DNA of 64,000 nucleotides from Pavona decussata. Lineage: Eukaryota. Both the position numbers and the translations under genes were made by a program. The stretch covers positions 806,001-870,000 of the forward strand of contig CDRNST010000095.1 of assembly GCA_977016875.1 (NCBI GenBank). The letters are read 5' to 3'. Under the pieces are notes generated by a model that saw only the letters and a program-made list of their open reading frames with translations, was not told the origin of the DNA and made no database searches. Below, in pieces: positions 18,301 through 51,499 of this stretch (its first letter is position 1; every line of letters starts with the position of its first letter).

Positions 18301-20156
18301 TTTGTTAGGATAACGGGAGTGCTATATTTCCGATGGGAGTTGAACTAGAGCGAATTTATACCATTTCAAACACCGCGTTAATACTTTGGCCACTAGGTCA
18401 GTTGTGATGGTGATGGTGACAGTGATCAGGTGATAGTGGTGATGGTGATCATGGATGGTGGTGAAAATGATGATGGTGATGGTAATTGTAATGATCAGGA
18501 GATGATGATAATGGTGATGGTGATGCCAGTCCAACCCAACCCCTTAACCAATTTTGGAACGTGAACAGTTTTTAACTACAGGCGTAGACTGCCCACTCCC
18601 CCTTATTTATGTAACGGTGGTGGTGATGGTGATGTTGAGGGTTGTCATGATGTTGATATGGTTTCTTTGATGATGGTGATATGCTGATTGTGATCCTGGT
18701 GATGGTGGTCGGGTTGTGATGGAGGTGGTTGTAGAAGTGATGGTGGTGGTGATGAGCCGAGGTGGTGGTGGTGATGATGATGATGTTGATGATGATGATG
18801 ATGATGATGATGAGCGTGATGGTGGTGGCGGCGATGGTGATGGTGATACAGTTCCAAACCAATCCCTCAACTAATTTTGGAACGTAAAAGGGTATTAAGT
18901 ACAGGCGAAGACTGCCCAATCTCCATCTCCATGTGATATTAATCTCTCTTTCTTATATTATGACCATTAAAATAAGCTTAACTGCATGAGAATTTTTGAA
19001 GGGCCAAACAAGGGTTTACACGGTATAAAATATAATCCTACCATAATTCCCTTGTCACGAACGAAGTTCCTGACTTTATCCATCACCTCATCTATTGATA
19101 TGCTCGTCGAGCTGCGAGACGATGTTTCTCCTGTTGATTTCTGCCTGAAGTGTGAGAGGAAAAAAACAAAGTTACCTTGACTGAGGAAACAAAATTGACT
19201 GAAACGTTTCTTCTCAAATAATGCATGATATGATATCAGCTGCGAAAGCAGGCTAAACTGGCCAACGTAAAACGACATGAATTTGACGTTTCGATCACTC
19301 GCCCTTCTTCTCTGACAAAGGATTAACGCTTCAAACACCAGATTCCGCTATAATAAGGAAATCGCCATGATGAATAGGAGCATTGCCATTAAGGGGTCCG
19401 AATTTTGCCCTCCAGCCTGCTAGATAGACCTCTCACAATCTCATTCCACCGGATCGGATTACGTTTTCAAAAACAATGTTACTGATCTAGGACAATCTAA
19501 ATTTCTTCCTGGTTGCCCTAGTGCTATAATTGCGGTAAAATGTCATTGGGAAGAGAATCAATGTTGTTATGAAATGGAATTTCATTATTTAATGACTTAG
19601 TGAGTTGAGGTTTTTTAGTTGAACGTTTTAGAACTTGTCACCGTTACGCTGATTCAAGGTCTAGGTTATCCTACATAAACGTTTTGTAGTTTATAAGTGT
19701 TGTCGTTCTGTTGATGGTTATTTTAGTGTTTTAACAGCTCTCGAAATAGAAATGCTTGGCGATCCTTGTTGACCTTGGCTTGGTCCACCATCAAATTTCG
19801 AGTTCTTAGTTTGTTGAATATAAACTATCGTTATTTCCAGGTTTTTCATTGGATACCTGTTATTTCAATGTGTGGTCGTGTAGGTTTATTTGGGTTTTCT
19901 TAGTTGAGTAGAAAACGGAATTCTGAAAGTTCCCACGGTCAGTTAACCCAAACATGTCAAAAAAAAAAAATCAGACTATTTAATTGCGAACATTCAAGCT
20001 TGTAGTCAGTCAGTTGCCACACAAGTTTAAAGACCCATTTTTTCCCAACACGGATCTCACGCTAGTTTACTAACTTATTAAGTCATACTCACAAAAAGAC
20101 CTAATAAAACAAATAAATAAATAAATAAATAATACTCACCTTTCACTTCCTGACAT
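13385..20156 (-). CDS. EF-hand-containing NADPH oxidase / ferric reductase (FRD superfamily)-like membrane flavocytochrome, 844 aa, 7 coding exons
   Basis: Exons 20156-20140, 19144-19042, 18253-18058, 17384-17243, 16647-16560, 15862-15797 and 15307-13385 join in one open frame (2535 nt) with GT-AG introns of matching phase. N-terminus has EF-hand-like repeats (FHEYDPLRKGFVTTSDF). Core has 6 TM with two His pairs, FAD motifs HPFT and GPY, and NADPH-domain motifs ATGSG, GRIDF and FVGRP. Confidence 0.88.
18400..18920. repeat. Two-copy intronic duplication of a (GAT/GGT)n tract plus short unique tail
   Basis: Trinucleotide tracts each followed by ccaa..ccc..aattttggaacgt..tacaggcg.agactgccca (~18530-18600 and ~18850-18920). 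Confidence 0.85.
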
Positions 20157-20227
20157 GTCAGTAAGATCAATATAACCTGTATGTATAAATACAATGGTTA
20201 ATACGTTTCGAGCCGCGAGGGGAAATA

Positions 20228-20370
20228 GGCCCAGATTTACGAAGTCTTTCTAAGTTAAGATGTATCTTAAGTATTGATTCTGGACAATAGTCTGTTGTTA
20301 GTCCAACAATAGGCCATTGTTTAGAAACAGATACATCTTAACTTATATGAAAGGCTTCGTGGATCTGGCC
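20228..20370. mobile_element. Palindromic ~143-bp MITE (Harbinger-like GGCC ends)
   Basis: ggcccagatttacgaagtctttc-taagttaagatgtatct pairs with agatacatcttaactta-tatgaaaggcttcgtggatctggcc; the centre is also self-complementary. Confidence 0.75.
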
Positions 20371-21269
20371 GCAGGAATGCGGCAAAGGCGTTGCCTGTGG
20401 TCCGGCACCCTAATCAACTCAGTGGGTATGGGCTTCTTTTATTCAAATGCGTCACTTTAGTCATAAACAAATAAAAATGTTAAAAGTCTTACAATAACTT
20501 GGAGATACTATTTGCTATCTGATAAGAACTTTATCAACTTTATCTAAGAACTTCATCTTTAAGAACTTTATCTGCGAACTTTTTGCTTTTTGATAAAATG
20601 AGGAAGGGAAGACTTTGGGGTGATACTTGAGGGAGGGCCGGGTTATTGGGAGAGGGTGGGAGTTACAGTCAATTACGTTTAAATTAGTAAGAAAACATAC
20701 CGCTTTCCACCGACATTAGGATGCAGTATTAAAACCTCAGAGGCACTCAGTGTTTTCACTAAATCTGTAAAAAGATAAAATACATTATAAAATAATCTTG
20801 ACTGACTGAATTCTCTGATTACTTTAAATCTGTGTTTGATTAACCAAAAGAAAGCAGTATATAGTATTTCATGCCGTGCCGTGTGAAAACAAACCATTTC
20901 AGTTGTCCAAATTTCTACGGACTGATTAGCAAAAAGGCTAGTAGAATTTTAAGAAAACACCAATTGCTTCCCTACTGGCTTGTGCTATTTTCCATAACCT
21001 CGCTCTTCCACACTTCTAAACTCATAGTCAATAAAGCTATATGACAACAAGAAAAATTGGCTATAAAATGTGGTACTATAACTAATAAAACTCGCGAATA
21101 ATTAAATAATTAATCCGTGTAGTAAGCAATCAAAACATAGTAAAACCATTCAACATATCTCCAAACTTCCGCACCCGAAGCGGGCTTTCGGTTTGCGTTA
21201 CAGCCCCGCGCATTTGAAACGGAAGTACAATATAACCGTGATGTTTTTGTCAACGTTTTGAGGAGGCCA

Positions 21270-22490
21270 GTTAACACGGTAGTTTATTGCATAAAAATGC
21301 GGTTTAACTACGTTTGAAAATTTTTGGCGTTACTGCGTGAACAAAATGGATGTGTAAGGATATCTTTCCGGCAAGATCAATGACCATGGGTGGATATCCA
21401 TCCATAAAATTTAAAAATTCGCTGAAAAATTGCGTTACTTCCGTTTCTTTCCATACTTGGAGGATATGATATCCATTTATTGTTAAGCCAATTACGTACC
21501 GAGTTTGAGCGATGACACTTCAATATGGCGTATATAACCGACTTTTTGCGTTTTCGCATGTTTGGCTGAGAAATGGCTTCGGCATTTAGAAGTTCGTGGG
21601 TCGATTTTATTCCCGCAGATGATGTGTTAGAAAAGATTTTTGGTAATGTAAACTCCGTCGAAGGGATGTATAATGATGAAGAAATCGATATAGACCGTCA
21701 GCTAGAAAACTAGAGCGAGGAATCGAGGTAAGCGCTTAACGAATTCCTTCGCGTCTGTTCGCGAAAGCGACGCCATCGAGCACATGGTTTTGAAATGCGG
21801 AGATATGCTCCTCAGGTTACTTTTTTTGCGTTTGATATCTCGTCTTGTTCTTGAATATTGATTATGAATTCGTATTTGTTGGTAAAAAGCTCAATAATGT
21901 TTGCTGAAAGCATATTTTAAGCGATGCGATTCAGAATATTTGCCCAATCGAAATCGATCCCGTAATTTGTTCAGTTGTTATGTTCCCATGGAGAAATGAA
22001 TTTCTTGACTTGTTTTGGTGCGATTGCATGGGCAAAAAAACAATCATAACTAATTTTAGATTTCTTCTTTTTCAGCCCAATTTTCAGGAAATGTTGCTGA
22101 CACGAGAAGGATCATTTCCTTTTTCAATTCATTGTACAATTACATATCACTTTGAAAAAAAAAATCGTTTATCTTCAGATATAATCAATTTCTTTTGTTA
22201 TTTTTTTCAGAAAAGTGCTGGGTTTCTATGATGGGATTTATCTTTTTTTCTGAGAAGCCCATTTTATACACTTTAAAATGAGATATTGTAGGCCATATTA
22301 CTGTAAATGGTTGTCCAGATAAAAAATAAACATTCGATGTGGTAAATTTCGCCTATTTTTTGCCTGCAGAAAATTGAAATATTAATTTCTGAGCATGCGT
22401 GGTATCATTTTCTTGTCGTACATATTGCATTTCAATCATTATAAAAGATAGCTTTCAACCAGCATGAGAGCGTACTCATTAGAGATTGCT
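21270..22490 (+). mobile_element. Probable decayed DNA transposon (piggyBac-like) with acidic first exon 21573-21727
   Basis: MASAFRSSWVDFIPADDVLEKIFGNVNSVEGMYNDEEIDIDRQLEN*SEES followed by donor GTAAGC; in-frame stop; ttaa-cac near 21271. Boundaries are approximate. Confidence 0.35.
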
Positions 22491-23665
22491 TAATCATTTG
22501 AGTAAATGCAGTTTTATCTTCTCTTCTCTGTTCTAAACAAGCCTGAATTTCTTAAGAACATTTAAAACGGAAATAGTTTTGAGCAAAAGGTTTTTTCAAG
22601 GTCCAGGGCGAATAATGATTGATAATTGTCTTTATCAATTCGTTCTTCCGGAAAGCTGCGTGCTTTGTTAGAATAAATGTGAAGTTATCGATGTGTTTAC
22701 CAAGCACTACCTTTACGTTACCACAATTTTCCGTTTCAGCAAAAAGGTATGACGAAAGCTATTTTGATAAGTACGGTTCATTGTGACACTGTTTAGTTAT
22801 TGCTGTTACGAAAAAAAAAAATTGAACATGAGAAAATGAAGCTTATCAATACAAGTAGAAATATTGATTCTATAAAAATTACCAGTTTTCTTTCTTGAGA
22901 CTTGAGTAGTTTTTGAGCTAAATCTTGCTGCAGTTTTGAAACCCCTTTGATGCTTTAGTTACCTGTATACGTTAGATTTGGAACTTCTAAATCAACAAAC
23001 GGTTGCTTTATTTGCTATTTTTTGTTATTAATTTGTTTATCCAAAAATGATATCTTCATGACATTATCACGTTCTCGTGCTGAAACGCGCAGAGGCTGAA
23101 ATAACTAGCAGGCGCCTTTAAGTTATAGGAAATGAGACAAAAAGCTGTAAAGGCTATAAACAGTGCTGATCTGGTAAGAGAACGATTTATGTCACTATCC
23201 GGTTATGATCGCCGTAAAGTCTCTATTTATAAACCTTATTTGAAATCTATGTGCAGAAATGAAACCTCAAACGTAAGAACAAAAATACCAAAGTCAAAAA
23301 GAGACCTCAAACTACGTATGAGAAGAAGAGCGTTGCTTGGCTATGAATGTTTTGTGCCAACGTAAAGAGATTCGAATCTCTTTACGGTAACCAAATTAGC
23401 TTATCAACTCTATCACCGACGAAGCACCACAGTTTCTTTAGAACTGATAAAGTGATATCCTTATACAAAGAAAGGCATATTAGCGATAAACTCTTTTGTG
23501 TAACCAATCCGTAGCTAGCCAAATAAAGAGAGAAATTTGGCAAGGGATAAAGATGTCTCAAGAATTCTTAGGTTGCCAGTATCCAAGCAACAACTTTTAA
23601 AATTTTCAGACCTAAAAAATATTAATATCATCTTCATCATCAGCTACCAAACCAGAAAGTTGAGC

Positions 23666-23950
23666 ACCTTGTTAAATTTGAGCCCTCCTCAATCATCTGG
23701 TGGCCATTCCTTCAAGCCGTGGAAAGTCAGAGGCTTCTTTTAAAGTAAAGCAAGTAACATCCCGGAATCCTTAAGGAAAAGCATTGATTTGCCATTTTTT
23801 ATAGCTTTTCGTACATTGACCACTGACAAAACAATAGCCAATCACACTGCGATTTATCGTTAAAGAAACTCTTATAGCTCCAGAAGTAACACCTTTCGCT
23901 TTACTTTGAGAACTGATCCTACCGATGCGAAGGGAAGAAACAGAGGAAGG
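23666..23950 (-). promoter_or_regulatory. Promoter-like module A (CCAAT, TATA, non-coding first exon, donor)
   Basis: CCAAT 23838-23842; - strand CTATAAAA ~23804-23797; aacaag|GT at 23667; homologous to modules B-D. Confidence 0.55.
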
Positions 23951-26018
23951 CCAATGTTTTTTTCACTTTCGTGGCTGAGTGGGACATCGGTAGAATTATA
24001 CTGAAACATTAAACAAAACCAAAGGTTGCGAAGGGAGAAATTTGTAATTTGACGTGAACCTCAGTCTTTTCGTCGAAGGGGTCCACAACAACGTACGTAT
24101 CGTGACAGCGATAATGTACGTGAAAGCGAACTGAAGCAAAGCTAAGTGGTGTGATTTAGATCGGAGACAGCAGTCTAAAATCATTTTGGGTCCGTAATTC
24201 ACGCCACTTGCCCTGGAGTTAGTTCATTCGCTCACACATTTAGGAAAATGAAAAATGTTACGAATACCATTTTAATCGATGACGCCAATAAGCCGGCCTT
24301 GGATATTAACCAAACAATATATTGTGGTTGCCTTCAGTATTGTTAAAGTATTGCTGTAGTCTTTTCTTTTCTTTATTTTTTTTAGGGAAAAAAGGTCACT
24401 CGTTCAGCTTCGAAGTTACCTAACTGAGCAACAATTGAAAGTTTCTTTGTTTGTTTTATTAACAACTAATTAGATTTCTCCCGAGTTCGGAATCAAGTTC
24501 TCTCGGAATAATATATGGCGACTAGCTGATGGATTCGAAATAAACGCAACAGTTGTTCTATATTGATCATATGACCAAAAGATACGAATGTTGAAAGTGA
24601 TGTCAGTAATAATTTTTATTTTTAAAACAGCAGTTTAATTTCGACGCTTCAGGCTTCAGCAACCATACTTTCACGTATACATAGCGAAATCTTCCTTTAA
24701 ATTTTTATATAAGCAATGCAGCACAGGATAATTAACTGTCACCCAAAGAATCACATGGAAACTGTATAATTAGATTTATTTTTAGCAGCTTGGTAATGAT
24801 TGATAAACAATGGCCAAATCTTCTTTTATGCGAACGGATACTAACTTGAAAACGTCGGGCCGGTTTTATAACGTTCTTTCGTCGTGTCTAAGATAACATT
24901 GCTAGCAATATGTTGCGGTTTATTTTTTCCTTGAAAATTCACCTGATTTCAACTCATTAGTGAAAGGCAACTCACTAATGAGAATTTGAGGTATTTTAAA
25001 CCTTAATTTAGAAATTTTGGAATTTTTACCCTAAAACGAGATAAACATCACGAATCTGCCCCTTTAACAATAATAAGAGAGTTAAAATACACATATATAA
25101 TTTTTCAACAGAAACCAAGTATTTACTCTGGCCAACCAGAGCAGACGTAAACAAGATAATCGACCAACCAAAAACAAGTGCATGTAGCCGACACCAAGCG
25201 CGGGAAAATGCGAGCTAGCAAGTCATTATTGGTTTTGGTTTTGCTTCTCATTGGCTGAGATTATGGAGCAAATTTTGCTAGCCATAGTGCATTAAAATAA
25301 AACCAAAGCAAACGCCAATCGACTTTCGACACTCAAAGAAAAACGGCTCTATTTCCGCCTGTATTCATTAAATTGCTCAATTGCAAATCGCACAATCGCA
25401 ACGAGCTTTAAGGAAAATTTTGAAGGCAAAAATATAACTTACTCCTTGATCCAGCACGTTTCCTTACAGAATAACTATTAATAACTATCAAAAAATAGTG
25501 AAAAGTAAAGCTGAAATGGAGAAACAAATACAAACAAGTAACAATTCACCTGAACCTTACTATAATAAATGGAAACCTTTAATTGAAAAGAAGTTTGTTC
25601 ACTCGCACTAGCAATGATGTATTCAGTCACTTTTTTTGTTGTACTCTGTAGTATGTGACATAAAGTACTGTAATTTAATGTAATTAATCTAACTAAATGG
25701 TTTCTAACATAGTCTTATATCGAATTGTAAATATTGTATTGTGTTGTAAGTATCATCAAGTATTGTAAATGTAAGGAAAATATTGTATTATACGTGTCAT
25801 CATATGCAAGCTAAGTCGTGTAATTTTTTTTGTAAGTGTTTTACAAAATAAAAGTTGTATTAAAAAATAATATTAGTAATGATAAATAACTATTAATAAC
25901 AATCATTATAAAAAAAATTCCTTCCAGTTCTTTCAGTCCTGGTCAGACGCGTGACTCACGCGCGTTTTTTTTTTTTATAATGAGATCAAGCATGACTTGA
26001 TTTCTTGGTATAGAATTA

Positions 26019-26580
26019 CAGCGGTTACCAATAACACGCGACCTACGGCATTCAAAAGAGTCGGATAAAGTTGCGTTTTGATGGACGTCAATCAAAGAAA
26101 AGCCGTTGAAATTATTTTGAATTCGGACAAGATTCCAAGGTAACCGTGCAAGAAACTAAGAGTTTTTACCTCGCTAAGAGAAGGTAAACTTTATTTAAAT
26201 TGATTCTCCAGCCAGACCAAGCGTAAATAAAAGTTATTTTTGAATTAAAAATTTCGATTTTCACTGCACGTGATAATTTGCTCGCTTGCACGCATCGCTG
26301 ATTTAATTGTCAGGTGAAGCGATTTCAAATGTTTCATAAAAAAAAATACGGCTTCGTCTAAACAATGCGCATTTTATAGATAACCTGCCTTGGAAATCAA
26401 CTTTTATAAAGTTTACCATCCGCCAGCGGATAAAACTGTCAATTTCTTCGTTCTGTTGCCTTAAAATGTTCTCAGAATTTAAAACAATTTGAACGGCTTT
26501 TCTTTGATTGACGTCCACCAAAACGCAACTTTATCGGAGTCTTTTGAGGGCGAAAGGTCGCGCGTTATTGGTTACCGCTG
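26019..26580. mobile_element. Tc1/mariner-type MITE
   Basis: ~100-bp TIRs (cagcggttaccaataacacgcgacc.. / ..ggtcgcgcgttattggttaccgctg) with TA on both sides. Confidence 0.88.
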
Positions 26581-27717
26581 TAAAGAATTAGCGAAACCAA
26601 GATAAGCTTCCTTTTCAGCATTTGAGTATGCGAGGATTATGATTTGGATAACATAGGCCACGCGATTACCTTTAGCGTCTTGTTTGTTCTTCCCGTTTCA
26701 ACTAACAACTATAACTGAGCTACGTTTTGAAAACTACAATTTACAACTGCAAAAGCAAGCCTCTAATGGGATTTACAATTGTAAATACCGTAGATAAAGC
26801 CACATGCTTTTTTTTTTTTTCTGCATGCTGAATAAAAACACCCTACGGATTTTACCAGTGCTGTTTTGCTATTCCGGTTTTCAGTCGCATTGCCGTTGAA
26901 ATATGGAAAACAAGTAAAGAGTATATAGCGAGCTTTGGACAGACACGAAAAGCTGTTTGTTTAATTGTTAATTACAGTCGGTATACATAATATCGCGTCT
27001 CTGTCGCAGCAACAGCTCGTAAGGCGGTAAACTCTTTCATTTACAGATTCAATCTCTTGGTCACGTACGCGTGGTACGCCCATCAGCTGATCGTGTCATT
27101 TTCTTTTGAAGGCGGCAAAGAAAGAAACAATAATAGTAAAAAAAGAATTTTGCTTATAGCTCCACAGGAAAGAACAGTTTCTTAAATTTTATTTGAATGG
27201 TTCGATCACTCTTAATTTCGAAAAATAAGATCCCCCGATTGCACAACATAACAGGACTACAAGAGACAAAAAGGTCAAAGTACTGCTTGACAGCGAGTTC
27301 CATTTGAGTTATCGTCCGGTGCAAACTCCCAAACCTTTTAGTAGGTATCGTTTTCAATAAGTTACTTGCACAATCAGAGAGAGATAATGCAACTTAATAA
27401 TATTGTTAACCCTTTAACGCCCCGCTATCAAAATGTATTTTCTTCCCACATTTGTCCATACATTTCTTATGATGTTAGTTTAGAGAATTTATCAAAAATT
27501 GTCACTCTGTTCCTAAAGAAGACTAGTGGTGCTATTTGAAATATTGGCTCAAACAAATTGCCCTGTCGGTCCTGTAATAAGTTTTGTTTATTGAGAGAAT
27601 TTGTTTGCACGTCAAGACATTTTAATCTTTGTTGATCGTTTTGTTTATTCTCATAACCTTCGTGTTTGATCAAGGTTTGACACAGTAAAGAGAACTTGTC
27701 ATTCTTTACTCCTGCGG

Positions 27718-28230
27718 TGCCAAACACGGAAGCAGCAGCCTGGGAAGAGATTTTCGTGCTAAAAGCAAACAACAATTTTCTCTCTGAACTTAGCTTGGCT
27801 ATTACTCAGTTTTCAATTTGATTTTTTTTTTTTAATTCGCTTGATCAAAAACATCCGCCGTTGCTGCAACGCAGAACACTGAGATAGCGAAATGTTAAAC
27901 GTTTACCATGCTTCAACGAGGCGATGGCTTCCTAAAACCTCTCGTGTAAGCGGTAGTCGAGAATTTCGTGAATCCTACTTGCAAGCCAAAACACGGAAGC
28001 GGCAGAGTAGGAAGAGATTTTCGTGCTAAAAGCAAACAACAATTTTCTCTCTGAACTTAGCTTGGCTATTACTCAGTTTTCAATTTTTTTTTTAATTCAC
28101 TCGGATCAAAAACATGCACCGTTACTACAACGCAGAACATTGAAATAGCGAAATGTTGAACGTTTACCTTCCTAAAACCCCTGTAAGTGTAAGCGGTTGT
28201 CGAGAATTTCGTGAATTCCTATTTGCATGC
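27718..28230. repeat. ~265-bp two-copy tandem duplication
   Basis: gccaaacacggaagc..gagattttcgtgctaaaagcaaac..cgagaatttcgtgaat occurs twice. Confidence 0.9.
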
Positions 28231-28469
28231 CAGTTTGCGAGATAGATACAGAACTTCGAAATCGGATCCGAAAACTGGACTACCCAGTCGATTTCCATTA
28301 TTGGTTCATAAATTTGAAACTAAATAAACACGATTACTTGGGAAATTTTTTCGTAACCGAGACTACACATAAGTTAGCTTTGAATCCTTAAAATGCTGAT
28401 ATCAGCAATCACAACTAATTAAAATCTAAACACCAACCTTATCGTGAACTGATAAACCCAACTTCAAGT

Positions 28470-28715
28470 ACCTTTTTGTTGTCACATTGGGCTATTATCG
28501 GGTAGTTCTTTGAGCCACTGAAAGCCAATTGTTCTAGGGTCTCGATTTCTCATAATTGTATAGTGGGCACGCATTGTTCGTTGCCATCAAATAATAGCCA
28601 ATCACGTCGGGCATGATAATTCCTTCAAAAACTCTTATTGGCTAACAACCGAAACCTTTTGTTTCACGTTAAGAGCTAACCCTGCTGATAAGAAGGAAAG
28701 GGAACAAGGGCAAGC
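28470..28715 (-). promoter_or_regulatory. Promoter-like module B
   Basis: CCAAT 28598-28602; degenerate TATA ~28563-28555; aaaaag|GTACTT at 28471; shared blocks aaactcttat and accttttgtttca. Confidence 0.5.
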
Positions 28716-28725
28716 CGGCTTTTCG

Positions 28726-28756
<31 letters not shown>

Positions 28757-31403
28757 TTGGACTTTGCCTTTGCCACTGAGGACATATAAAGAGGGTGTCC
28801 TACAAAAGGATTTCTGATAATTCGTATCACAAAGCATTCCGTTCAACTTCTCACGATCTGGGCGCATTGTTGGCTGACCCGACTTCTTGGAATACTTCCC
28901 AAGTACACTTTATGCTTACTAAGCCAAAACGTGTTTCCGTTTCAGCTCTAAGGAAAATAACTTCGATCATATGATTGTGTAACCTGTGATGTTGTCATGA
29001 ATAATGATGAAAATCGGCCTGATTCAAAAGGTCTTTAGCTCTGCCACAGATTTTTAGAAATCTCGCCGATTTAGGTCTAAGCAATCATTTTCTTTAACAA
29101 ATTGGACCCAATCAGCCCTATTAATTGGCATGCGTAAATTAGCCATAATAGCATCTAAAGGGTGCGTGCGTAACTCGCGCCCATTGTTTAACAGTGTGCT
29201 ATCGTTTCTTACTCGCTTTTATTCCTGCCCAAAATGTCAACAAGAGGAGGGAAAATGGAAGAATATGAACACTTTTCACAGACCCTGGCACAATTGCTGA
29301 ACATTTCTTAAACCTTTTTATTCTGGAGACGCGAGACCATAAAAAAAAACTAATCTTCAAATCACCGTGCTTGCTCAAGTAAGCTCTCATTTGAAAGTCA
29401 CGCTATGGGATTCTGTCCAAAGATTCAAAAACTAGGTATAAGTTCCTTACATCTTAGCTTAGTAAACAGCACCACAAGACAATAGTACTTTTAAAGTTGA
29501 AGGATTCAAATTGAACGACAAATCTATAGCGCAAAACTTTTTGCATCACGGCAGATCCAAAGAAGTTAAGTTTTTGTGCGTGCTTAAAGGTAATGCTAAA
29601 GTTATCGATTTTTAACGCAACCTGGCAGCAGTCTCTTGTTAAAAATTGTTATCGTGTAATCTACATCAGCATCAACTAACAAACCTAAATTTAAGCTCTT
29701 TGTTTTTAGCTTATTTTCTTACCAGGTAGTTTCCTTTAACCTGCTGGATATCAAGTCAGTGGCGTGATATGCACAGTCAGTGATATTCCAGATGTTTTCA
29801 GTTCCTGCCTATTAAGCACACAATCAGTAGCCAAATTGCCATTGCGTGTAATTGTTCTCAAACTCTAATCGATCGGCAAACAATACAAAATCCACGGTTG
29901 GGAAACTTCAGGCCGTGAATTCAGTCTGAAAAGCCAGAAACTAATTAATTTATTTTCTTCTTCTTCTTCTTCTTTCTTTTTTTTTTTTTTATTCCCAATG
30001 TATGAATTTAAGATAAAGCTATACAGCGAAAAATATAATAAGCAATTTGGACAAAACAAGATTACCGTCACGCTTGCAGGAACTATTTATTAGAAGTGGG
30101 AATGCTATCGCTGCCAAGAGTTAAGAGACTCGTCCGCAAAAATTTGTCGTTTCAGAAAATACTCCTAAGGAAGAGAAAATTAGTTTGAAGAAAGCAATGT
30201 GGTCGGGGCAGACAGATCGCGGTCTAGACATCTTATTCGTAATACGCGTGCCAACAGGCGTTAACTTGTTTACCGCGTTTACCAAAGGGAAACTGTTGTT
30301 TTTAATAAAAATGCAAATTCATTTGGCAATATCAAAGGTCTTTAGTTACGGGCGATTAATCTGAGAGTTTTCAAAAACGTTGGCCAAGCCGCGGTTGAAC
30401 ACACCTCAGAGTTACTTATCCAATATCCATAACAATGTACCTTACGGACGTATAAGTGTTTTTTTTTTTCTTCAACAAAATGTTTTCAAATTGGCTTAGG
30501 TGTAATGGCCATACAAGATTACTTTTATGTTTCATGTCTATGACAGAAGAGTGTTAGCGTGCAAATGCTAATTCAGTGTAGAACACGTGCCTCTACCAAC
30601 AGAGCAAGAAACTTATTCATTTTGGCCAATTAATTATGGAATGATATTCATTCCGCTCAACTGTTTTATATAGTTTTAGACTCTTTGTACATATAGTTTT
30701 ATATTTATCTATTTTCTACAACGTTTGATAAGAAATGGACCAATTAACCCCGTACTTCAATTCTGAGCGGCGTTCCTGTTTTGTTAAAAACTCACTCACT
30801 TTGGTTTCTTAGGATGCCATTGCGGTTAATTAAAATAGTTGACCGAGTGCAGTGGAACAACTCGAGTCGGAAAAAGGCATATTTTTTTTAAATAATTATT
30901 AGTAAAGAAGACTCAGTACATTTTAAACTTGAAAAAAGCGCGCGATAAAACAGGCATGAGTTAGAAAATAGCTAACTTTCATATTCAATGACTTAACAGA
31001 ACCGATCCGGCCTAGCTATACTGCGAACGAAAGCGGAATGATTGCTTAAGTCATGCACAGAGTAACTTTATTTCGAAAGAAGTTAAAGACTGGATGGAGA
31101 GCAGAATGGGAAAAAAATTAGCTGATAAGGCGTGAGCTTCTATCTTAAAATATTATACATGGATGACATAAATTGTTCCGCTGGCATTTCTTTGCCTCCT
31201 GCTCGACAGATTCTTAAAATTTATCGCGTACGTGAGCAATGACACGCGAGGAAAAGCATTGGGGCAAAACGGTGACGTTCAGGTTAAGGCAAGGGTTCAT
31301 GCTCTGCATGATAAGTTGTACAAGTCAACTGGCTTCTGTCAACAGTCTTCAACTCATTTGTTACACATGGAAGTTATTTTTCGATGCCAGCAGTTATCGT
31401 TAT

Positions 31404-31512
31404 CAGTATCCGAACTAGTAATCGGAAGGTCTTAGGTTCGACTTATGATACAAGCACTCGGACTTTGCTTCTTCCGAGTATTGCCTGTGTCACTTTGAAT
31501 AATACATCACTC
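31404..31512 (+). mobile_element. Degraded copy of the tRNA-derived repeat at 57660-57960
   Basis: atccgaactagtaatcggaaggtcttaggttcgact..gcactcgga..tgtgtcactt matches the reverse complement of ~57660-57770. Confidence 0.75.
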
Positions 31513-33103
31513 TTACAAGTTATCGTGTTATGGGCAATTAATGAGTCTCTGAAGTGTTGTCAAAATTCTGCGGTCATGTGCCAAACAAAACTTTGCTGAA
31601 AATGCGTCACTTACCAAAGATCGCAAAGAGCTGTTAAGTGTTTTCTTTTCTTGTCTTGAAATGCATTCTTATGGGCAAATATATTTCAGTTTTAGTGATA
31701 AGCTAACCTTTACATAAGTTTCTGGCCAACTGTGCGCCTTGTTTAGCTAGCTTTTAACTTAAGCGTGGCTCGATTTCTTGAAATAATTGACAAATATACA
31801 TTGAGTGCTTACTAACTGAGGCAATCACAAAGTAATACCACAGTCATTCTCATGTAAGTAAAAGAGTATGAGGAAAACTATATCAAAAATGGTATGTGGC
31901 GTCTTACGTATGACACTTTTTTCTTCTTCGTCTTTTTTTTTCTTTTTTTTTTTACATCATGAGCTTTTTCTTCGAAACGATAATTACACAATATTCATGA
32001 AAGAGTGTCATGTGATGGCGTTTGCCTTGTTTCCTATCACCGCTATGAGGAAGTTTAATACCAAACATGTACACCTACGCCTATTCATGGACCGAAGGTT
32101 AAAAATTTGTACCATTGATAGTAAGACTCCTGTGATTGTGAAGACGAAGACATATTGAGGTAACTGTAGAAATCAACCTCCAGTCTGCTGATAAAGTCAA
32201 ATATAAACGTACATAGATACAATATTCTATTTTTTCTACCGATCTTTGCAGTAAGCATTTTTGCCGCAAGTCAACCCCGCTAATGCATGATAACAAAACA
32301 GGAAGAGTAGTCAGAAAATGTGTGGCCTTATTCGTTGACTTTGTATACGACTTTCCTCTGTATATATTGGTTTTGTAGTTTAAACTAAAACCTTTTGCTC
32401 AAAACACATGCACAGCACCTAATTTTCCGGGTTAGAGCGCAGCGTAGTACCTAATCAGATTTTAAGGTGAAATCAGACTTGACGTTATAGCTTACGTTTT
32501 TTTCTTGAACTGAGGTATTATTTGTTTCGAATTCAGTCGGAATATTGTATTAAGTGCTCCCTCATTTGAAATATCTGGAACCAAAAGTTGTGGCATTCTG
32601 TGGATGGGCTCTTATGTCGCCCTTCCGCAAACGAAAATTATTGGATAGTTTTTCCTGGTGGGTGCTTTTGAGTCCCTGAATAAAATCAGCTTGCGACATT
32701 TTGTAATAAATGAAGACTACATGTACTTATCAATTTTCCGTGTGGTATCTTAAAATTAGTAGAATTTTATTTGTGAAAAGAATCAATGAAACAGAATAAA
32801 GCCCTTCCCTTCTCTCTATGATCCTTCAATTGAAAATCGAATCATAACTATCGGAGTGCTGGCTGAAAATCGCACAACTTATGTAATGGCTGATAAGTGA
32901 TAACACACCTGTTGCCAAACCGAGTGAAAGAAATTGGCTTGAACAATCACACACACAAAAAATTGAAAGTTGAAAATCGAAATTGAGTTGAACAATCTAA
33001 AAAATGCTTAGAATGCTGTCATGTACGGCAAAAACAAGTAATGTTTTTTGGGCAATTTCACTGAACGGCATAGTGAACTAACAATTTAAATCTAAAGGCA
33101 AAT

Positions 33104-33380
33104 ACCTTGTTTGCACCTTCGCTACTTATCTGGTAGCCGTCTTGAACCGTTCAATTCAGGAGGCTGGTGTGTCTTCGGCAAATGCTCTAGAAATGTCAGA
33201 TTAAAGGCTGCGACTTATCATTTTTATATAGTGTAAATTGTATATTGCACACCAAATATTAGCCAATCGTATTTAAGCCTAACAATTGCTTCTAAAACGC
33301 CCGCCGTCCATAGCTTAAACCTTTTGTTTCATTATTGTTAGAGCCGCTAAACATGCAGATATTAAGGAAGGGAAAAAGAC
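33104..33380 (-). promoter_or_regulatory. Promoter-like module C
   Basis: CCAAT 33263-33267; - strand CTATATAAAAA 33231-33221; aaacaag|GTATTT at 33105. Confidence 0.55.
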
Positions 33381-34411
33381 AGCCTCCTTCTCAACCATGA
33401 CGTAAATGAGTAGAAAAATATTTGAAGTACTAAAATTGGGAAAGCAACGACAATGCTAAACAGAAAAAAAAAATCGTTTTCATTTCTTAGTGTACGTGTA
33501 GAATTCGAGTCAGGAGTAAGTTAATTAACAAAGACACAAAAAGGAGAGAAAGCAGAAGAGGAAGTTATTTTAATTAAAACACGGGCCCAGCTTCATCCAT
33601 AAACATGAATGATGCCGTAACTCGTTCTTCATCGATATCGGCATTTTTTGGATTCCGAGCTGAAACATCCACAAACACATGTGTCCTCTCTGCACCAAAA
33701 AAATATTTGAAACAAAGCGATGCTGAGTATTTTAGACGTCCCAAATTGCTTGAACCCTTGATTCGTTTGCCGCATTTGCGAAAAGGGAACTTGTACCATT
33801 ACAAATGCAAATTAAGTCTATAGCAAAACAGGTGGAAGTTTGTGTTTTTTTAAATATATAAATGGAGCACTTAACTAACTTGGAACTTAGAGCTGTTTTG
33901 TAGTTTTGTTAGCATGCTTAAAGGCAACAATATTTGTTGTAATCCAAGGTGTTTCTTGCCGAATAATTATTGTTGATAATAGTCCTAAACCACTCCTTAC
34001 GAAAATGGCATGGGCTTGTGCTGACGAAGTAATAACCAAAGAAAACCACAAAGAGCTTCCGTTTCAGCGAGATGGCTATCTGTGACGCTGTTCTATTTAG
34101 TTCTATCACAATACAGCCTATTGTTCTTGAAAACCACAATAGCTTGTCAAATGGGAAGCCTCTTAAATGCTTTACAAAAAGAGGATACCGTGGGCAATGC
34201 AACTTGACGTTTGACACTTACTTCCTTTTTATTTATTTTTTATTTAATTGTTTAATTCTGGCCTGTTAATGTCAGAAACGTGCAACAGACTCCTTTCGAC
34301 ACATAAAAATTCAGCTTGACGATGAGCCAAACAAAGGAAACTGAATAATCATGTTTATTAATTCCTGTCGTTTGTGTCGTCTGGACCTAGATATCAAGTT
34401 AAATGTTTTAA

Positions 34412-34669
34412 AGGCCCACCTTCACCCAAGAGTCATTGCGGTCGTTTGTTTTTCTTTTGAAATGCGGTATTGTCCAAACGCGTGGTCTTATTGGCTGTAC
34501 GAGCTCAAGAGGTTCATACGGGTTTCCTCTACGACTCGTGCTGAAGGGAAAGACTATTCGTGATCGCTTATTGCTTTCTCACTCGACTCCCGCTCAAATA
34601 AAATAGGGGGGTTTTCATATTTGAAAACTGTTCCTCGGCGCGCAATACATCTTGGGTGAATGTGGGCCT
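34412..34669. mobile_element. Kolobok-like MITE
   Basis: ttaa-aggcccaccttcacccaaga ... tcttgggtgaatgtgggcct-ttaa. Confidence 0.85.
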
Positions 34670-35921
34670 TTAAACATTAATTTTCGAAAGGAGCCTATAT
34701 TACGTAATAAGTTCAGTTTGAAGAAACACGCAAAGAAGTCTGCGGAAGGCGCCTACTTCAATCGCAAAAATATTTTCCTAAAGTTTTTTCGTCCGCACAA
34801 AAACTGATAGTACGAACATCTTTACATCTGAACATGTTCGATTACTTATAATTGACGTTAATGCGCAAATAAGTGCCATTTTAAGTATTTTACAACAAGG
34901 AAGGTTTACGAAAATGTTCAACAGTTTGACTCCGTTTGCTGGGATAGTACATTTAAGACACCAAATTATCGTCTTCTTCAAATTACTGATAGACATTTTT
35001 AGATTCTTATACTAGTACCATTGTTCCAATAGAGCGTGCGAACCATTGTCATTTTGGCGAGAAAACAAGATAGTTGTCGTCATTTTACTACGAGTTTTCA
35101 GTTTGTGATAACAGGGTAGTTGTAGAAACAGGTCCTCGAAACGTAGGTGACCTGAACAGACTTTTTTAGAATCACAAGAGTGTTAAGCTATCATCATCAT
35201 TCGAAACAACTTGTTAAGTTCATCGCTCGCAGAGAGTAAACTGATGAAGCTTTCTGGGATATATCTCTTCTTTGTACTTCGTTAAAACCTTGAAGTCAAA
35301 TCTCGTATGTTCGTAGTCGTACCCTTACTAGGTCTCTACTGAATAAACAGCATCACAGAAAGTTCAGTTGAATGACTTCTATTTCAATGGTCATTTAAAA
35401 CGCCAAAAACAAAACAAAGCATTTTTAGTTGATAGTTGATTGAATCCAAATAAAAGGTAAATTGAGTGGTATTAGGCGATTGGCGTGGAATTAGGCTTAA
35501 GTATTTCCCATTAATTTCCCACTTCCTTGCTTTCCTTTGCAAAGCTTCTTAATCCTTCATCCAAAATTTGAAAGATTGCGAAACAGAGACTTAATATGCT
35601 ATTACCAATCATTGACAACACACACAACCCTCGACGGTTAAAAAAAGATATTATAGTGCGGAGGAAAACATGCACTAATTGTTTACAAGAGATCATTTTA
35701 CGAAATAAACTACCTCAGTATTTTATGTAACGTTCTTTTGTCACTTTGCATAACACTCGCACAGCCAGACCAAATGCCGAGAGAACGTTCTATGAAGTTC
35801 AATGGCTCAAAGGAATCTTTAGAATGTTGTTACCCTTAGCGATATCAAATTTATTCAGTCTTAGACGAAAGCCTAAATATCAATATCTTTAGTCGACTGC
35901 CAAGCCTAAGCAAACTCGAGT

Positions 35922-36215
35922 ACCTTGTTTGAACCTTCGTCAATCAGACACTTATCCTACAGCTTCCTTCAACTACTGAAAGTAAATATAATATTGCTTG
36001 AGGTCGATCGAGGTCAGCAATGTTCCAAGAGACTTAGTTCCTTAAGAGCCGTTCTGTTATTTTTAGTGTATTGAATATTAAGCGTTAGATCAATCAGTGC
36101 CAATCACATTGCGAGTAATTGCCTTAGAAACTCTTATTGCGGCGAATGAGCGATACCTTTTCTTTCACCTCGAATAAAAACAGCCTGTGTTTAAAGATTC
36201 GAAGACAGATAAGGA
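35922..36215 (-). promoter_or_regulatory. Promoter-like module D
   Basis: CCAAT 36100-36104; degenerate TATA ~36066-36057; gaaggttcaaacaag|GTACTC at 35923 (module C has gaaggtgcaaacaag|GT). Confidence 0.5.
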
Positions 36216-36787
36216 ACGTATAACATTTCAAACGCTGTGAGCAAGAAAGTAAATCATTACCTACATTTTCTTTGGCCGTAATCTAAACCCAACGAAAAGT
36301 TCCATTTCAAAAATTAAATTTTTAAGAAAGATATAAGGAAGATAATTAATATTATATAGTGCAAATGTTCGACCATGACATTTTTTACATTCATAATTTA
36401 AAGACTCCACAATAGAATTTTCAGAATCAACCAAACGATATGGTATACTGTGAAAGACCACAGTCTAGACATATTATTCTTGGCACATACTAACTACCTT
36501 CCACTCATTTACCGCAGTTGGCAAATGGAAAACTGTTTCAAATGCAAATTCAGTTGACGACATCGGCAAACGCTGTATAAAGACAGTTATTCTGCGGCTT
36601 TACACGCCCTAAATTGCTTGCGAAAAATGGGTATTCCATCCAACATCGCAATATATTTTAGGTTAAGTGTATATTGAGTGTTATTTATTTAAAGCTGGCC
36701 TCAGTTTGTTTTTCCCTGTACACACAGTGACGCCATCCACATGTTAAAAATAGTTGAGAGTAGTGGAGCGAATTTCAAAAACAGAAA

Positions 36788-36788
<1 letters not shown>

Positions 36789-36818
<30 letters not shown>

Positions 36819-36841
36819 AAGAAGAAGAAGAAGAAGAAGAA
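36789..36841. repeat. (AAG)n microsatellite
   Basis: Direct tandem repeat. Confidence 0.95.
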
Positions 36842-39419
36842 AATGAATTCTTCTTGCATGTGGTTAACTTTCACGGAACGTTCTAACATTGTAAGATGAA
36901 CAAGATTGGTTTCATTTTTCCATTCACTTTTAACTTAACTCATCCAATGAAATCAAAGCTTCTACAGGGACGCCCAAATTAAATGTTTATTTCGGTGGAT
37001 ACCCGCAGTTTTGTTTGGCAAAATTTCAGATCAAAATTTTCCGACAGTAGAAAACTAATTCCTCTCTTTCACAAGGCAACAAAAAGATCGAAAACCAAAA
37101 ACAGCTAGTATAAAATTCTGGGAGTAAAATTTGACGTTTCCTAAAATTATCTGCAAGTTGAACTTAAATTTTCTGCTAAAGCATCAGAGCATATCAATCT
37201 GTATTAGCTTGCAAACATATGTTTTAAAAGGGTAAGCAAAACCATCTGGGATCATATTTGCCTCTCAGCAAGACACAAAAGACATTGGTTTTTCAACAGT
37301 ACCAAAATTTCCAGTGACCTGTCGCTAAAGAAAACGCTAGTTTTTGTTCACTATTTAATCCGGCCGCATTTCCGAGGCACCTAATGTTTCTCCGAGCAGA
37401 TATTCTACTGACCGAAACGAGCCGTTGCGTGCCCATGTGTTACATTGTAATTCAGGAAGGATTTCGGTTCAAAATGGCATGATTTCGTGACTTAAATCGG
37501 CGTATTGTCTTTGTTATCTCTTAGAGGATTTCAGCAATCCAATAATTTAAAAAATCTTTCAATAGGCTTATAATGTGGGGCTTCAGAAATCTTTCAGAAT
37601 TTTTGTTTTATGTGAGACCACGGAGAAAAATTTAGATTGAAGAGTAATAATTATCTTACAATAACTGTCAAATTCCTCACGTGCTGATTGGCTTATTTAA
37701 TTTTTGTTTGTCGTCAATAAGAGTACGGATTGGTCGAGTGCAGACGGATGAAGAGTCGGAGAGCCGACGGCCGTGTTCTTGATATTTCATGAATCAAAAC
37801 AGAATCCTCGGAAATGCTTGAGATAAAATGAAAGAACTTTTGAAATGTGTCTCTGGAACGGAAACGTGAGCATGTTTGTTGAGGTTTGACCTGGAACCAT
37901 GAGCTGAACTAAACAATGGCTAGCGGATTATTTTGAGGCAATAAATTACTCAGTGGAATAAAGGTCAGTCTCCAAAATTCCAGTTCTCTGGTGTGTCTCT
38001 GAGTTGTTTAAGATTTAGAATATTAGTCAGCAAACCCTAAATCATCCGAAGTTTTAAGCTTATCGATAAACATTCGAATTCAGGTGCTGTGAATATCTCC
38101 TGGCGCAGCAAGTGACATTCTCGAACTATTGTAGCTCTACTCCAGTTACTTGCTGATTGAAACCATGTTTTGAATGATTCCGGTTTGAGCGCTTTTACGA
38201 GGTCAATATAAGCACCCCGGCGTTGTTAAATCTCATTTACCCGCCTGTGAAAGTAAAAGCAATTGGCTTAGAAGGAATTCGTGTTGAAGGAATAGATGAC
38301 AGCTTACTGAAAGCATAAACTTATTCTTGATAAATTATACAAAGCACGAAATAATCTTCTTACTTTCTTGTGGCTTCTTAGCCTTTTGAAGCATTTTACA
38401 TTTCAGTCCTTTGACAAATTTAGCGTGTATTTCTAGAACAATCCAGTGACGTCATGCAGAGACTTAAGGACAAATAAAGCATTACAGCATTGAAGAGTGC
38501 AAAAATTAGTTTGCTAGTTTAATTGAGGTTTAATTGTCAGTTTAATTGAAATTTAGACTATAGTCCCGTGATAAAAGCAACTGTTATCACTTTTTAAGTA
38601 TCATCTGTAACTATTTCTCGATTCAAAATTGTTGTGAATTTGGAAGCGCACAGTGCGACATTGTTCGATGTCTGTGAACTGTCATTATGAATGATATATC
38701 CTGACCTTGTTTCAGCTCTCATGGCATGAGGAAGCTGAATATTAAATAGCACTTATTTACCAGATCTATTGATTGAATTTACCGTAAAATGATTTATAAG
38801 CACTATTTACCCGGTTGCAAATTGCATTTGATGCACTTAATTCAACTAGTTTTGAAACCAAAGGCACGCTCTAGCCCTTTCCCTGCAGTCTTGCCTCTCC
38901 CTCTCTCGACGATAAGGTGATCATTTTGCGCGCAAATTGAAAGCGAAATTCTGTCATTACTAAGTGATATTTATTCGAGTGCTCACTCTACAGATTGTTA
39001 TTCACATGATGAAAGTAAATGTCAGCACGGTGTATGATTGAACAAGGTCGTGGAAAGATCAGGACAAAGAAAACAGATCGACTCAATGGAGCTAAGAGCG
39101 GAAATTGTTTGCGGTTTTCTTTAAATTAAGGTCCCTTCATATTGAGATAAGTGTCTAAATCCTCTAGGAGAAAGAAGTTCTGTTTACAAAACTATTTTTA
39201 AACTCTTTCGTTCTTATGTCTTGTTAGGTCTGCTGTTTTGGCGTGAAAAAAATTACCCGATATACCCGATTTTGAATTCTTCTGTTCAAAGTTTATATGC
39301 GTTCATTCCATGGAGAACATAATGACTCGCGAAAGACGTTGTCTGTCTTTCTAGCTGTTTCTTTATATAGACAGCTGCGCTAAGTGAAACGATCATAGGT
39401 CTTGCTATAAAAATCCAAT

Positions 39420-40575
39420 AATCCAAAATCCATCTGCGATATTGAAAGTAGATATTCTGAGAGGTCAGTCGTAACGAAAGTGCATTGAGCTACCACTGCG
39501 ATGCAACATATATATTTTTAGCTTTCAGGATTCCTTCATCCTTCATGTCACCTTAAATAAGGTTATCTCGTTAAGAACGATGGCTTTAGTTACAATGTTC
39601 TTTTCAAAGCTGTTGACGCAAAGGGACTTTTTTTTTGCAAATGTAACAAAATTATGAAACTAGACAGGCAAGCAAATTTCTGGTAACTGAGGTTTGGACG
39701 GAGAGAAACTCACAAATACGAGACTTGCGTTCATTAACTTAATTCCCTTCTGTTTGCCAGATATCTAGTTTAAACTGAATTGTTCCGCTGATTTTCCGTC
39801 AATAGGCTGATCTAACGTTTCATTCAGCTGAAGTACAGAGTAATGTATGGAATGCTGTTCAAGTGAAATCAAAGTTAACCCTTTCTTACTGATCAAGCGG
39901 TGCGGGGTATACATGTAATTTCATTTCGCCAAACAGTCAAATATGAGAGTGCTAGCGATAATCAACTTTCTTTTGCGGAACTCAATGAGCTAAACAAAAA
40001 AATCTTAGAAAAGTGGCTCCTAAGATGAGAATGAGACGCGCTTTGATCATTGGTGTAAAAACTACTGAGGAATACTTCCACGAGGTAATGCACATTGTGT
40101 AAAATTTTAGTCCAGCGATCGAAGCTCATTTTGGCATTTTCAAACGAACTACTATACCTGGCATTTCTTCCGTGTAGCCGTACTAGAAAATTGGCTAATT
40201 TATGGTCCGTCCAATCAAACTCCGATCGAGAACTGCATGCACTCGTCAAAACTCGCATCATATCAGTTAACAACGGGCGCTGAGCTGTCTAGAAAAGGCC
40301 TTACCACTTAGGAATTGACCGCGCAACAACTGACCTTAACCAAGTGAACTAGCGGTTAAGCTGCATATTATCTAAGGTTTACATGAGCAGATGAGGTTGG
40401 TGTTGTTTCTTAGAGTAATCAAGTCAATTAAATTTGTTTTAAAAAACCCGACTCTTACCTTGCGTACTATGTGAGAAGTCCAGAGGCTTCAAAATGCTCT
40501 TGGCTCTGTAATCCAGCCGAATGAGTCGTTTAGTAATGTGTGGGTGTGTTTTATGCACATGGAGGTGTCATGTGA
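39420..40575. repeat. ~1.15-kb local segmental duplication, copy 1
   Basis: Colinear with 49963-51100 from aatccaaaatccatctg to ggaggtgtcatgtga. Confidence 0.92.
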
Positions 40576-41606
40576 TTGGAGAGTAATGTCAAGGTGGAAT
40601 GAGGAAGAAAAAAAATCTTGGCGACATCTTGCTGCTCATTAAATTTATTCCCCTCGGGTGTTTAGAAAAAAAAAATAATGCTGTGTAGCCATATTATCAG
40701 ACTGAAATTAGATAGACGAACTGCATTACATTAAAAACTTGCGCAATCTGAGATATTCGGCGATTTTCACTATCTTTTTACCCTTTTTTTTTCTTTTAAA
40801 CAAAAATGTTCAGTTTGTTATTAAATCAACTCAAACATCGATTTATCCCTAATCGCTGAAATCCGGACGTGTAAACATTTCAGTATGAAAATTGTTAACT
40901 ACAGTAAATGTACCCTCCTGAAGTAAAACATTAAATATACTGTCTCCTGCGGTAAAAGTACGTACTCTCCTAAAGTAAATGTACTCTCCTTTACTATGCA
41001 AGGTCGTTTTCAATTAGTGTTTAAAGACGTAAATAAAATCCTCTCGTTTTACTATAGATGCCAAGCATTTTTTTCTTGGGGTTCTGTTTATTGCAGCATA
41101 AAATTGGCTTTACTTTTTAAGGATGACTTCTAACGCTGAATGCGTCTTGAAACTCACGAAAACGTTTCAGCTCTAAGACGGAAACGATACAGTTTGGAGT
41201 TAAATCTCTGAACTGGCGTTTTGGAAAGGTTTTACTTATCGTGTCCAGTTGCTGTCAATCTTCAGAGCCTTTATCGTATACAAAATATTTTGACGGAACT
41301 TATCCCTTCAATTCAAATCAGTTTATTAAAATTCGTAGGTCAAGTCGCAAGGACCAAAAGTTGATCCCCGCGGGTTGACTTCTTAAGGAAAATGAATAAT
41401 TCGCACATTTAGAAACGTCCTGGGTCTGGGGACGTTTTTCAATGTAAATGTGTGATTTACAGCAAGCACGAGTTTGTTTGAATCGTTAAGTTAATGTTTT
41501 GTCGTCTGGGTACATCTTGGTTAGCATCTGTTTCGGGAGGCATTATATTGCCTCAGAAATTCGGTTTAGTTTAAAAAAAAAAGTGTAGTTTTCGTTTTCG
41601 GATGAG

Positions 41607-49960: not shown

Positions 49961-49962
49961 AT

Positions 49963-51100: not shown

Positions 51101-51499
51101 CAGTTGTCACAGCAAGGCTGAGATTTGCCCAAGGCGCAGAAATTAATCAATTAAGGCCAAGAGAGGGCTTGACACCGGAAGATCAGCTGGCGTCGTAGGA
51201 CATTCGATAATTCCATGAAAACAAATCACTGGGTGAACAAATTTATGCATCGACTGGGCCTGACTGCAATGGCGTGCGGATGCAATTTGTAAAAGCTCCA
51301 TACTAAAATGGTTTTTTAGCCCAAACGGTACTACTGTAGCACCTTCTACAGAGTAGTTGGCCTTGCAAGTTAAAAAGTTTATCCCATGCAACAGAGGCAG
51401 TTTTCTTAGTAGATATCTGCATGGGCAAAAAAACATACGAAATCGAGTTTGAGTTCATCTGTCGAAGAAGACGATATGACCGCTTCGAATTACCAATCC

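Follow-up and report, generated by a model that had tools for sequence, protein, structure and literature searches.

The DNA considered here, referred to as the window, is a stretch of 64,000 nucleotides from the coral Pavona decussata (assembly GCA_977016875.1, contig CDRNST010000095.1, positions 806,001 to 870,000), and coordinates are those of the window unless a contig is named. It carries a NOX-like gene on the minus strand, gene A, whose 5′ intron holds a tandem array of diverged, same-strand sequence modules. An original prediction, made from the sequence alone, described four of these modules as promoter and first-exon blocks and offered three explanations for them: alternative promoters feeding the NOX-like gene, a family of non-coding RNA units, or promoters left behind by decayed genes. 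The evidence assembled below points, tentatively, to promoter-type regulatory modules that are specific to this locus.

The NOX-like gene family and its 5′ exons

Gene A has two paralogs on the same contig, B (G000:C95:770001-780000, L032) and C (G000:C95:694001-704000, L033), which sit ~50 and ~130 kb from A, respectively. B and C are 97.3% identical to one another, and each is collinear with A at ~90-92.6% identity. RNA evidence was taken from Logan contigs over window positions 20100-26099, from the ATG exon to 2 kb past the first module, b1, which is the sole module covered. The runs were X1, X2, and X5, guessed to be RNA and drawn from two studies, together with X8, a metatranscriptome. 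Such contigs cannot show transcript starts, ends, or strand and drop rare forms, and negatives from them are weak. The 5′ exons of gene A and their homologs are as follows.

20140-20176, minus strand: ATG exon of the NOX-like gene, with the ATG at 20156-20154 and the acceptor AG at 20178-20177
20701-20764, minus strand: 64-nt exon of the 5′ untranslated region (UTR exon, exon 2), spliced to the ATG exon; one base (20758) differs from B and C
38811-38900, minus strand: homolog of upstream 5′ exon 1a, with donor G/GTAAAT after 38811; use shown for paralog C; 5′ end nominal
40459-40488, minus strand: homolog of upstream 5′ exon 1b, with donor AAG/GTAAGAG after 40459; use shown for paralog B; 5′ end nominal

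The ATG exon had been predicted to need an upstream untranslated exon, and RNA contigs supply one through a minus-strand GT..AG junction at 20176/20701 (depth 231/65/424). The same junction goes against the proposal that the blocks feed the NOX-like gene, as the partner of the ATG exon is the UTR exon and not a block. From 20764 the contigs go on into sequence mapping to 38815-38844 in X5 and to 40461-40488 in X1, and the letters beyond 20764 have no mismatches to C (X5) and B (X1), against one and two to A. Loose ends at 20766 and 20768, considered as upstream exons of A itself, were withdrawn on the strength of these mismatch counts. The contigs of B and C show the 5′ architecture of the family, in which exon 1a or 1b is followed by the UTR exon and the UTR exon by the ATG exon. 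Because the UTR exon, where its source is visible, is fed from the positions homologous to 38811 and 40459, the array lies inside an 18-kb intron of A. The intron from the UTR exon to exon 1a measures 18,046 nt in A, compared with 3,435 in B and 3,407 in C.

Assignment of RNA to a particular gene needs care. Junction words are common to all three genes because the exons are nearly identical among them: the ATG exon of A differs from those of B and C only in its last four bases, and the UTR exon differs at 20758 only, where A carries T. The contigs break at 20728, 30 nt short of 20758, and this suggests that both 20758 variants are present in X1 and X5. Since part of the RNA evidence on A comes from paralogs that are ~90-94% identical and 50-130 kb away, claims about expression of A must use paralog-specific positions.

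The region of exon 1b is also duplicated locally: 39289-40639, which contains the exon-1b homolog, is repeated at 49840-51143, and each of the three paralogous loci has a second 1b-like copy ~10.5 kb beyond the first (C95:856930, 791922, and 713669).

Diverged copies of a 390-bp module

The modules were aligned with MAFFT and scored with a sequence-only profile, R1, built from the module core. The copies and the conserved islands beside them, termed E2, are listed below.

23562-23950, minus strand: module b1 (R1 96.5 bits; motif alignment); left motif 23562-23575, ACCTT 23666-23670 (AAG/GT on the minus strand), TATA (minus strand) 23803-23795, GCCAATC 23837-23843, AAACTCTTAT 23866-23875, ACCTTT 23891-23896, purine tract to ~23950
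28382-28712, minus strand: module b2 (R1 92.2 bits), whose "exon" part is shorter than in the other modules; left motif 28382-28395, ACCTT 28470-28474, weak TATA-like tract ~28552-28564, GCCAATC 28597-28603, AAACTCTTAT 28629-28638, ACCTTT 28654-28659
~29690-29890, minus strand: module w5, a degenerate fifth copy (R1 18.3 bits, E 1.5e-4; z 4.4-9.2); CCAAT box broken to GCCAAAT 29830-29836, AAACTCTAAT retained 29860-29869, ACCTTT absent
30211-30333, unstranded: E2 island beside w5, containing AAATGCAAATT (z 13-18)
33002-33378, minus strand: module b3 (R1 75.5 bits); left motif 33002-33015, ACCTT 33104-33108, TATATAAAAA (minus strand) ~33232-33221, GCCAATC 33262-33268, AAACGC 33295-33300, ACCTTT 33319-33324
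33731-33817, unstranded: E2 island beside b3, with the octamer ATGCAAAT
35813-36212, minus strand: module b4 (R1 86.9 bits); left motif 35813-35826, ACCTT 35922-35926, TAAAAATA (minus strand) 36065-36058, GCCAATC 36099-36105, AAACTCTTAT 36128-36137, ACCTTT 36155-36160
36452-36620, unstranded: E2 island beside b4, with the octamer ATGCAAAT

The four blocks b1 to b4 were recovered on the same strand and at the positions first reported, with start-to-start spacings of 4804, 4634, and 2818 bp. Smith-Waterman comparison against mononucleotide shuffles gave z = 5.7-25.7 for all six block pairs, and the motifs occur in the same order in each. The similarity is old and faint: mean column identity in the alignment is 60-63%, and pairwise identity is 51-66%, which is why a strict self-blast (E ≤ 1e-3) misses the blocks. 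With permissive blastn scoring between the units around each block, the block is the top match in four of six unit pairs (E 3e-7 to 2.6e-4) and the second-ranked match between u3 and u4 (E 0.012), and it is absent from the matches listed between u1 and u3. The predicted count of four held, and the R1 profile added w5, matched at 29779-29885, which resembles all four blocks. All five same-strand copies fall within the intron 20765-38810.

Among the motifs proposed as common, ACCTT, GCCAATC, AAAC(T/G)C, and ACCTTT are invariant in all four blocks, and ATCTGGT proved restricted to b1 and b3. Six motifs keep their order and spacing across the modules. The 63 invariant columns of the alignment are clustered, with runs of seven, six, and five, and a longest run of at least seven together with a second of at least six was met with P = 5e-5 in 20,000 column shuffles. 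This pattern reads as the signature of constrained short sites amid drifting sequence. GCCAATC, in which the CCAAT pentamer has NF-Y-type flanks, is followed by A in three of the four blocks. On the minus strand the predicted order was borne out: an inverted CCAAT box, a TATA-like tract, ~60-110 nt, and AAG/GT, with exactly 34 nt from GCCAATC to the TATA-like tract in b1, b3, and b4 and a weak tract in b2. Decay is furthest advanced in w5, which is the sole copy whose CCAAT box is broken.

The blocks had been drawn at ~280 bp with similarity ending at the proposed splice donor, and this extent was too short. A sliding-identity profile follows conservation ~100 bp past the donor (~23565 to 23950 in b1 coordinates), as far as the motif GAATnCTTAGrATG, which marks the outer left end 88-109 nt from ACCTT. 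With this left extension each module measures ~390 bp, and in the flanks identity falls to background. The spacers between modules are beyond alignment except for E2, a second conserved island 400-500 bp to the right of w5, b3, and b4 (z 13-18) that carries AAATGCAAATT, which includes the octamer ATGCAAAT. No E2 island was found beside b1 or b2. Counted with E2, which lies upstream of the module in the minus-strand sense, the unit spans ~900 bp.

Coding potential was absent, as had been predicted. Searches for paralogous open reading frames (ORFs) between units returned nothing at E ≤ 1e-3 except a translation of the block itself, with mixed-strand noise under relaxed settings, and the "leader" between TATA and AAG/GT has no ATG or open frame common to the copies (ATGATT occurs in b1 alone).

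Locus specificity and excluded identities

The modules are confined to this locus. A blast search with b1 against the 602-Mb assembly matched itself alone, and R1 found only the four array copies at E ≤ 0.1, a lower bound given that 150 of many candidates were scored. The composite pattern GCCAATC-N(20-28)-AAACNC-N(16-23)-ACCTTT had six matches in the genome, comprising the four array copies and two unrelated sites, and its reversed control had none in 602 Mb. The 1.3-kb segment around b1 is likewise unique, save for a high-copy palindromic element of 40-70 bp at ~23372-23445. The modules share no homology (z < 3) with the regions around exons 1a, 1b, and 2, and a search of Joint Genome Institute (JGI) metagenome contigs for module orthologs gave two chance matches only. 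Weak profile matches on contig C217 were dismissed as module copies, as they belong to a separate young tandem repeat sharing only CCAAT...AACTCT. This unrelated, near-identical repeat (G000:C217:428994-448031) has a period of 2-4 kb and carries AACCAATAAC...AAGAACTCTCAT.

These genome-wide searches address the possibility that the original prediction had named as its refutation, a dispersed repeat or solo long terminal repeat (LTR). Short same-orientation repeats with promoter-like motifs do resemble LTRs and the 5′ ends of long interspersed nuclear elements, yet blast, profile, and pattern searches of the 602 Mb gave no further copies, the module ends show no terminal repeats or target-site duplications, and the true repeats nearby, a miniature inverted-repeat transposable element (MITE) at 26013-26583 and the palindrome at ~23372-23445, are distinct and high-copy. 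It is barely credible that the modules descend from a transposable element or solo LTR family. The MITE-like element is young and ~570 bp long, its inverted ends of ~130 nt reach 85% complementarity, its genomic copies number at least 39 at 90-94% identity, and its RNA-contig depth is very high. At 27722-28232, just downstream of b2 on the minus strand, a ~265-bp unit is duplicated in tandem (81-94% identity).

Other identities were also set aside. Structured RNA was rejected on negative results from Rfam (no family at E ≤ 1 over 20000-40000) and RNAalifold (no conserved fold over 326 columns, with consensus energies of -1.0 kcal/mol on the plus strand and -3.9 kcal/mol on the minus strand), and boxes of small nucleolar RNAs were not found by eye. 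A TTTT run that follows the TATA box by ~17 nt speaks against an RNA polymerase III type-3 unit. Spliced-leader RNA genes were rejected because the copies have diverged much too far from one another, and recursive-splice sites were discounted for want of a pyrimidine tract and AG ahead of AAGGT.

An old array probably retained by one paralog

Alignment of the three genes places the B and C counterparts of A at 16861-19983, 19980-22778, 24097-25313, and 38588-41019 and leaves two segments found in A only.

22779-24096, unstranded: A-only segment of 1318 bp that holds b1; absent from B and C
25314-38587, unstranded: A-only segment of 13,274 bp that holds b2, w5, b3, b4, and all E2 islands; absent from B and C

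The R1 profile found no module in B or C (best 6.6 bits). Microhomology at the breakpoints of the two segments does not exceed 1 nt, and target-site duplications are absent. The structure of A is not an assembly artefact, because three of its four breakpoints are spanned by contigs that come from other individuals in two studies, namely the left and right ends of the 1.3-kb segment and the left end of the 13.3-kb one. The right breakpoint, 38587, lies outside the stretch covered by contigs. Four runs that are probably DNA, X12-X15, hold 77-83% of sampled words. An X2 joint from 22778 to 24096 was rejected as a splice, as it reproduces the structure of B and C.

The array appears to be older than the gene family in its present form. 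Jukes-Cantor distances are ~0.45-0.8 between modules and ~0.1 between A and B or C, and since the modules have diverged far more than the genes, the array should predate the gene duplication. The segment 24097-25313, which separates b1 from b2, is common to all three genes, and parsimony therefore favors an array already present in the ancestor, with two deletions in the lineage of B and C. Under this history the array would predate the split of A from B and C, and the B/C lineage would have lost it cleanly; it is less likely that A gained the two segments by separate imports.

A proposed role as promoter-type regulatory modules

Taken together, the blocks may be functional, locus-specific cis-regulatory modules of promoter type belonging to paralog A, a reading held with a little less than even confidence. 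They would descend, as old tandem paralogs, from a single cis-regulatory module of ~390 bp, organized as a classical RNA polymerase II promoter pointing in the direction of the host gene on the minus strand. The putative order begins with E2 and its POU-type octamer and continues with a pyrimidine tract, AAAGGT, ATAAGAGTTT, an inverted NF-Y-type CCAAT box, and TATA at 34 nt, followed by ~60-110 nt, AAG/GT, and a further conserved motif ~100 nt downstream. Purifying selection on transcription-factor sites would keep each copy, and the modules would act on A as an internal conditional promoter or enhancer, providing regulation that B and C lack. The site-sized invariance, fixed spacing, pairing of CCAAT with TATA, octamer island, decay of w5, and drifted spacers together argue for long-term selection on transcription-factor binding.

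Several observations weigh against a promoter-type function. Spliced RNA contigs are obtained from paralogs B and C, which have no module, and the modules are therefore not needed for expression of the gene family. At the proposed b1 donor, 23668/9, no splice joint or contig break occurs in X1, X2, X5, or X8. The junction expected there by the original prediction did not appear, as contigs of three runs pass straight through, unbroken in X1 over 23499-24264 and in X5 over 23053-25257. Downstream of b1 no exon-like depth step is seen on either strand, with depth flat at ~5-15. Differences from other individuals are as dense in b1 (8 in 291 nt) as in its flanks (21 in 766 nt); no variant in b1 falls on an invariant column, which alone has P ~0.14. 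The proposed donors are weak (GTGCTC, GTACTT, GTATTT, and GTACTC, or GTRYTY, without +4A or +5G), and conservation continues past them. The strand of the modules is read from the orientation of TATA alone, and the plus strand offers both an initiator-like (Inr-like) TTTCAC and a spliced RNA across b1.

The same b1 contigs bear on the stricter form of the alternative-promoter proposal, in which each module would be an alternative promoter with a non-coding first exon whose donor joins the common UTR exon, at the acceptor before 20764, in unsampled stages or tissues. The array is oriented as the gene is and occupies the intron that immediately precedes the common acceptor, the layout of CCAAT, TATA, leader, and AAG/GT is retained in four copies, alternative 5′ exons already exist in the family (1a in C and 1b in B), and near-identical exons mask which 5′ exon A uses. 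Set against these are the four runs without a junction, loose end, or break at 23668/9, the donor weakness, the conservation reaching ~100 nt into the supposed intron, and the spliced RNA contigs of the module-free B and C, and the proposal is unlikely. Its broader extension, a bank of alternative promoters with untranslated leaders that would form a non-coding counterpart of the UGT1 and protocadherin design and give stage- or cell-specific, perhaps mutually exclusive, expression of A, is more doubtful still.

RNA on the opposite strand raises a further alternative, that the modules are independent non-coding RNA units, as the original prediction allowed, or bidirectional or plus-strand promoters for antisense transcripts across the intron. 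One feature is relevant.

23174-23643, plus strand: intron of a low-level spliced antisense transcript (X2 joint 23173/23644, GT..AG, depth 5.6)

The exon of this transcript that begins at 23644 runs through b1, and the splice is the only one wholly in A-specific DNA. The CCAAT box stands in its canonical orientation on the plus strand, with TTTCAC ~60 nt 3′ of it. Against the alternative, the plus-strand acceptor at 23643 is not conserved in b2-b4, the folding energies and Rfam search give no sign of a conserved RNA, and the flat depth downstream of b1 holds for either strand. Independent RNA units or antisense promoters are quite improbable on this evidence.

Contigs of X1 and X5, from different studies, carry a 27-nt insertion relative to the reference at 23355, and haplotype divergence across the array is ~2.7%.

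The regulatory reading must also be weighed against neutrality. An ancient local tandem duplication could have left a relic whose best piece can still be aligned by chance or because the local mutation rate is low, an explanation close to the earlier suggestion of promoters from decayed genes. The low identity (51-66%), the visible decay of w5, the loss of all copies from B and C with spliced RNA contigs still produced, and the unreduced variant density in b1 fit such a relic. The clustering of invariant sites into 5-7-mers (P = 5e-5) and the exact 34-nt motif spacing do not, and uniform neutral decay would leave another pattern than spacers that are unalignable apart from E2. A neutral relic is on balance rather unlikely, and motif-level constraint likewise disfavors promoters of decayed genes.

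Comparison with known systems

The UGT1 locus has tandem homologous promoter/first-exon units upstream of shared exons (PMC3325998), and the clustered protocadherins have tandem units, each with a conserved promoter element, upstream of shared exons (PMC3333863). The coral array resembles both in its tandem homologous units, placed in gene orientation upstream of shared downstream exons. Those systems differ in having long coding first exons with demonstrated splicing to constant exons, whereas the coral leader would be non-coding, 60-110 nt long, and followed by weak donors, and splicing from b1 was not seen.

Shadow enhancers and tandemly duplicated intronic enhancers provide a second point of comparison, with diverged copies in one intron and conservation in islands the size of transcription-factor sites. 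The coral array shares with them several diverged module copies in one intron and site-sized conserved islands, but such enhancers do not usually have a TATA set at one distance from CCAAT in consistent orientation. By this comparison the array would resemble variable-first-exon clusters and shadow enhancers equally.

The CCAAT box of RNA polymerase II promoters usually lies at -60 to -100, and a TATA 34 nt away would place the coral CCAAT box at about -70. NF-Y binds the CCAAT box, and GCCAATC(A) fits the NF-Y consensus (PMC4889920). If transcription runs in the direction proposed here, the coral box is inverted, an arrangement that NF-Y sites tolerate.

If the modules are active, the locus offers a compact natural experiment in cnidarian gene regulation, in which three paralogs have near-identical exons and 5′ exons, one keeps a bank of five units, and two have lost the bank cleanly. 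Comparing expression of A with that of B and C would directly test the contribution of tandemly duplicated regulatory modules, and if the array is a bank of alternative promoters, B and C would be natural knock-outs. If the modules are inactive, the array is an ordinary old intronic duplication.

Further features of the intron

A small transcription unit nested in the intron occupies 21540-22076 on the plus strand and is common to B and C. A TATATAAC box stands ~45 nt upstream of an ATG at 21573, which opens a 46-codon ORF (21573-21713), and an X2 joint connects a donor at 21727 with an acceptor at 22076; past the short ORF the unit appears non-coding. Depth in the X8 metatranscriptome is high at 21300-22500.

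The word GAAACGGAA, which combines an IRF/ISRE-like GAAA-NN-GAAA core (ISRE, interferon-stimulated response element) with an ETS-type GGAA, occurs seven times against 0.93 expected, at 21216, 21439, 22729, 28935, 34057, 1552, and 43647. Five of the seven occurrences lie in the 5′ intron, and three copies are embedded in a longer common word, TTCCGTTTCAGC.

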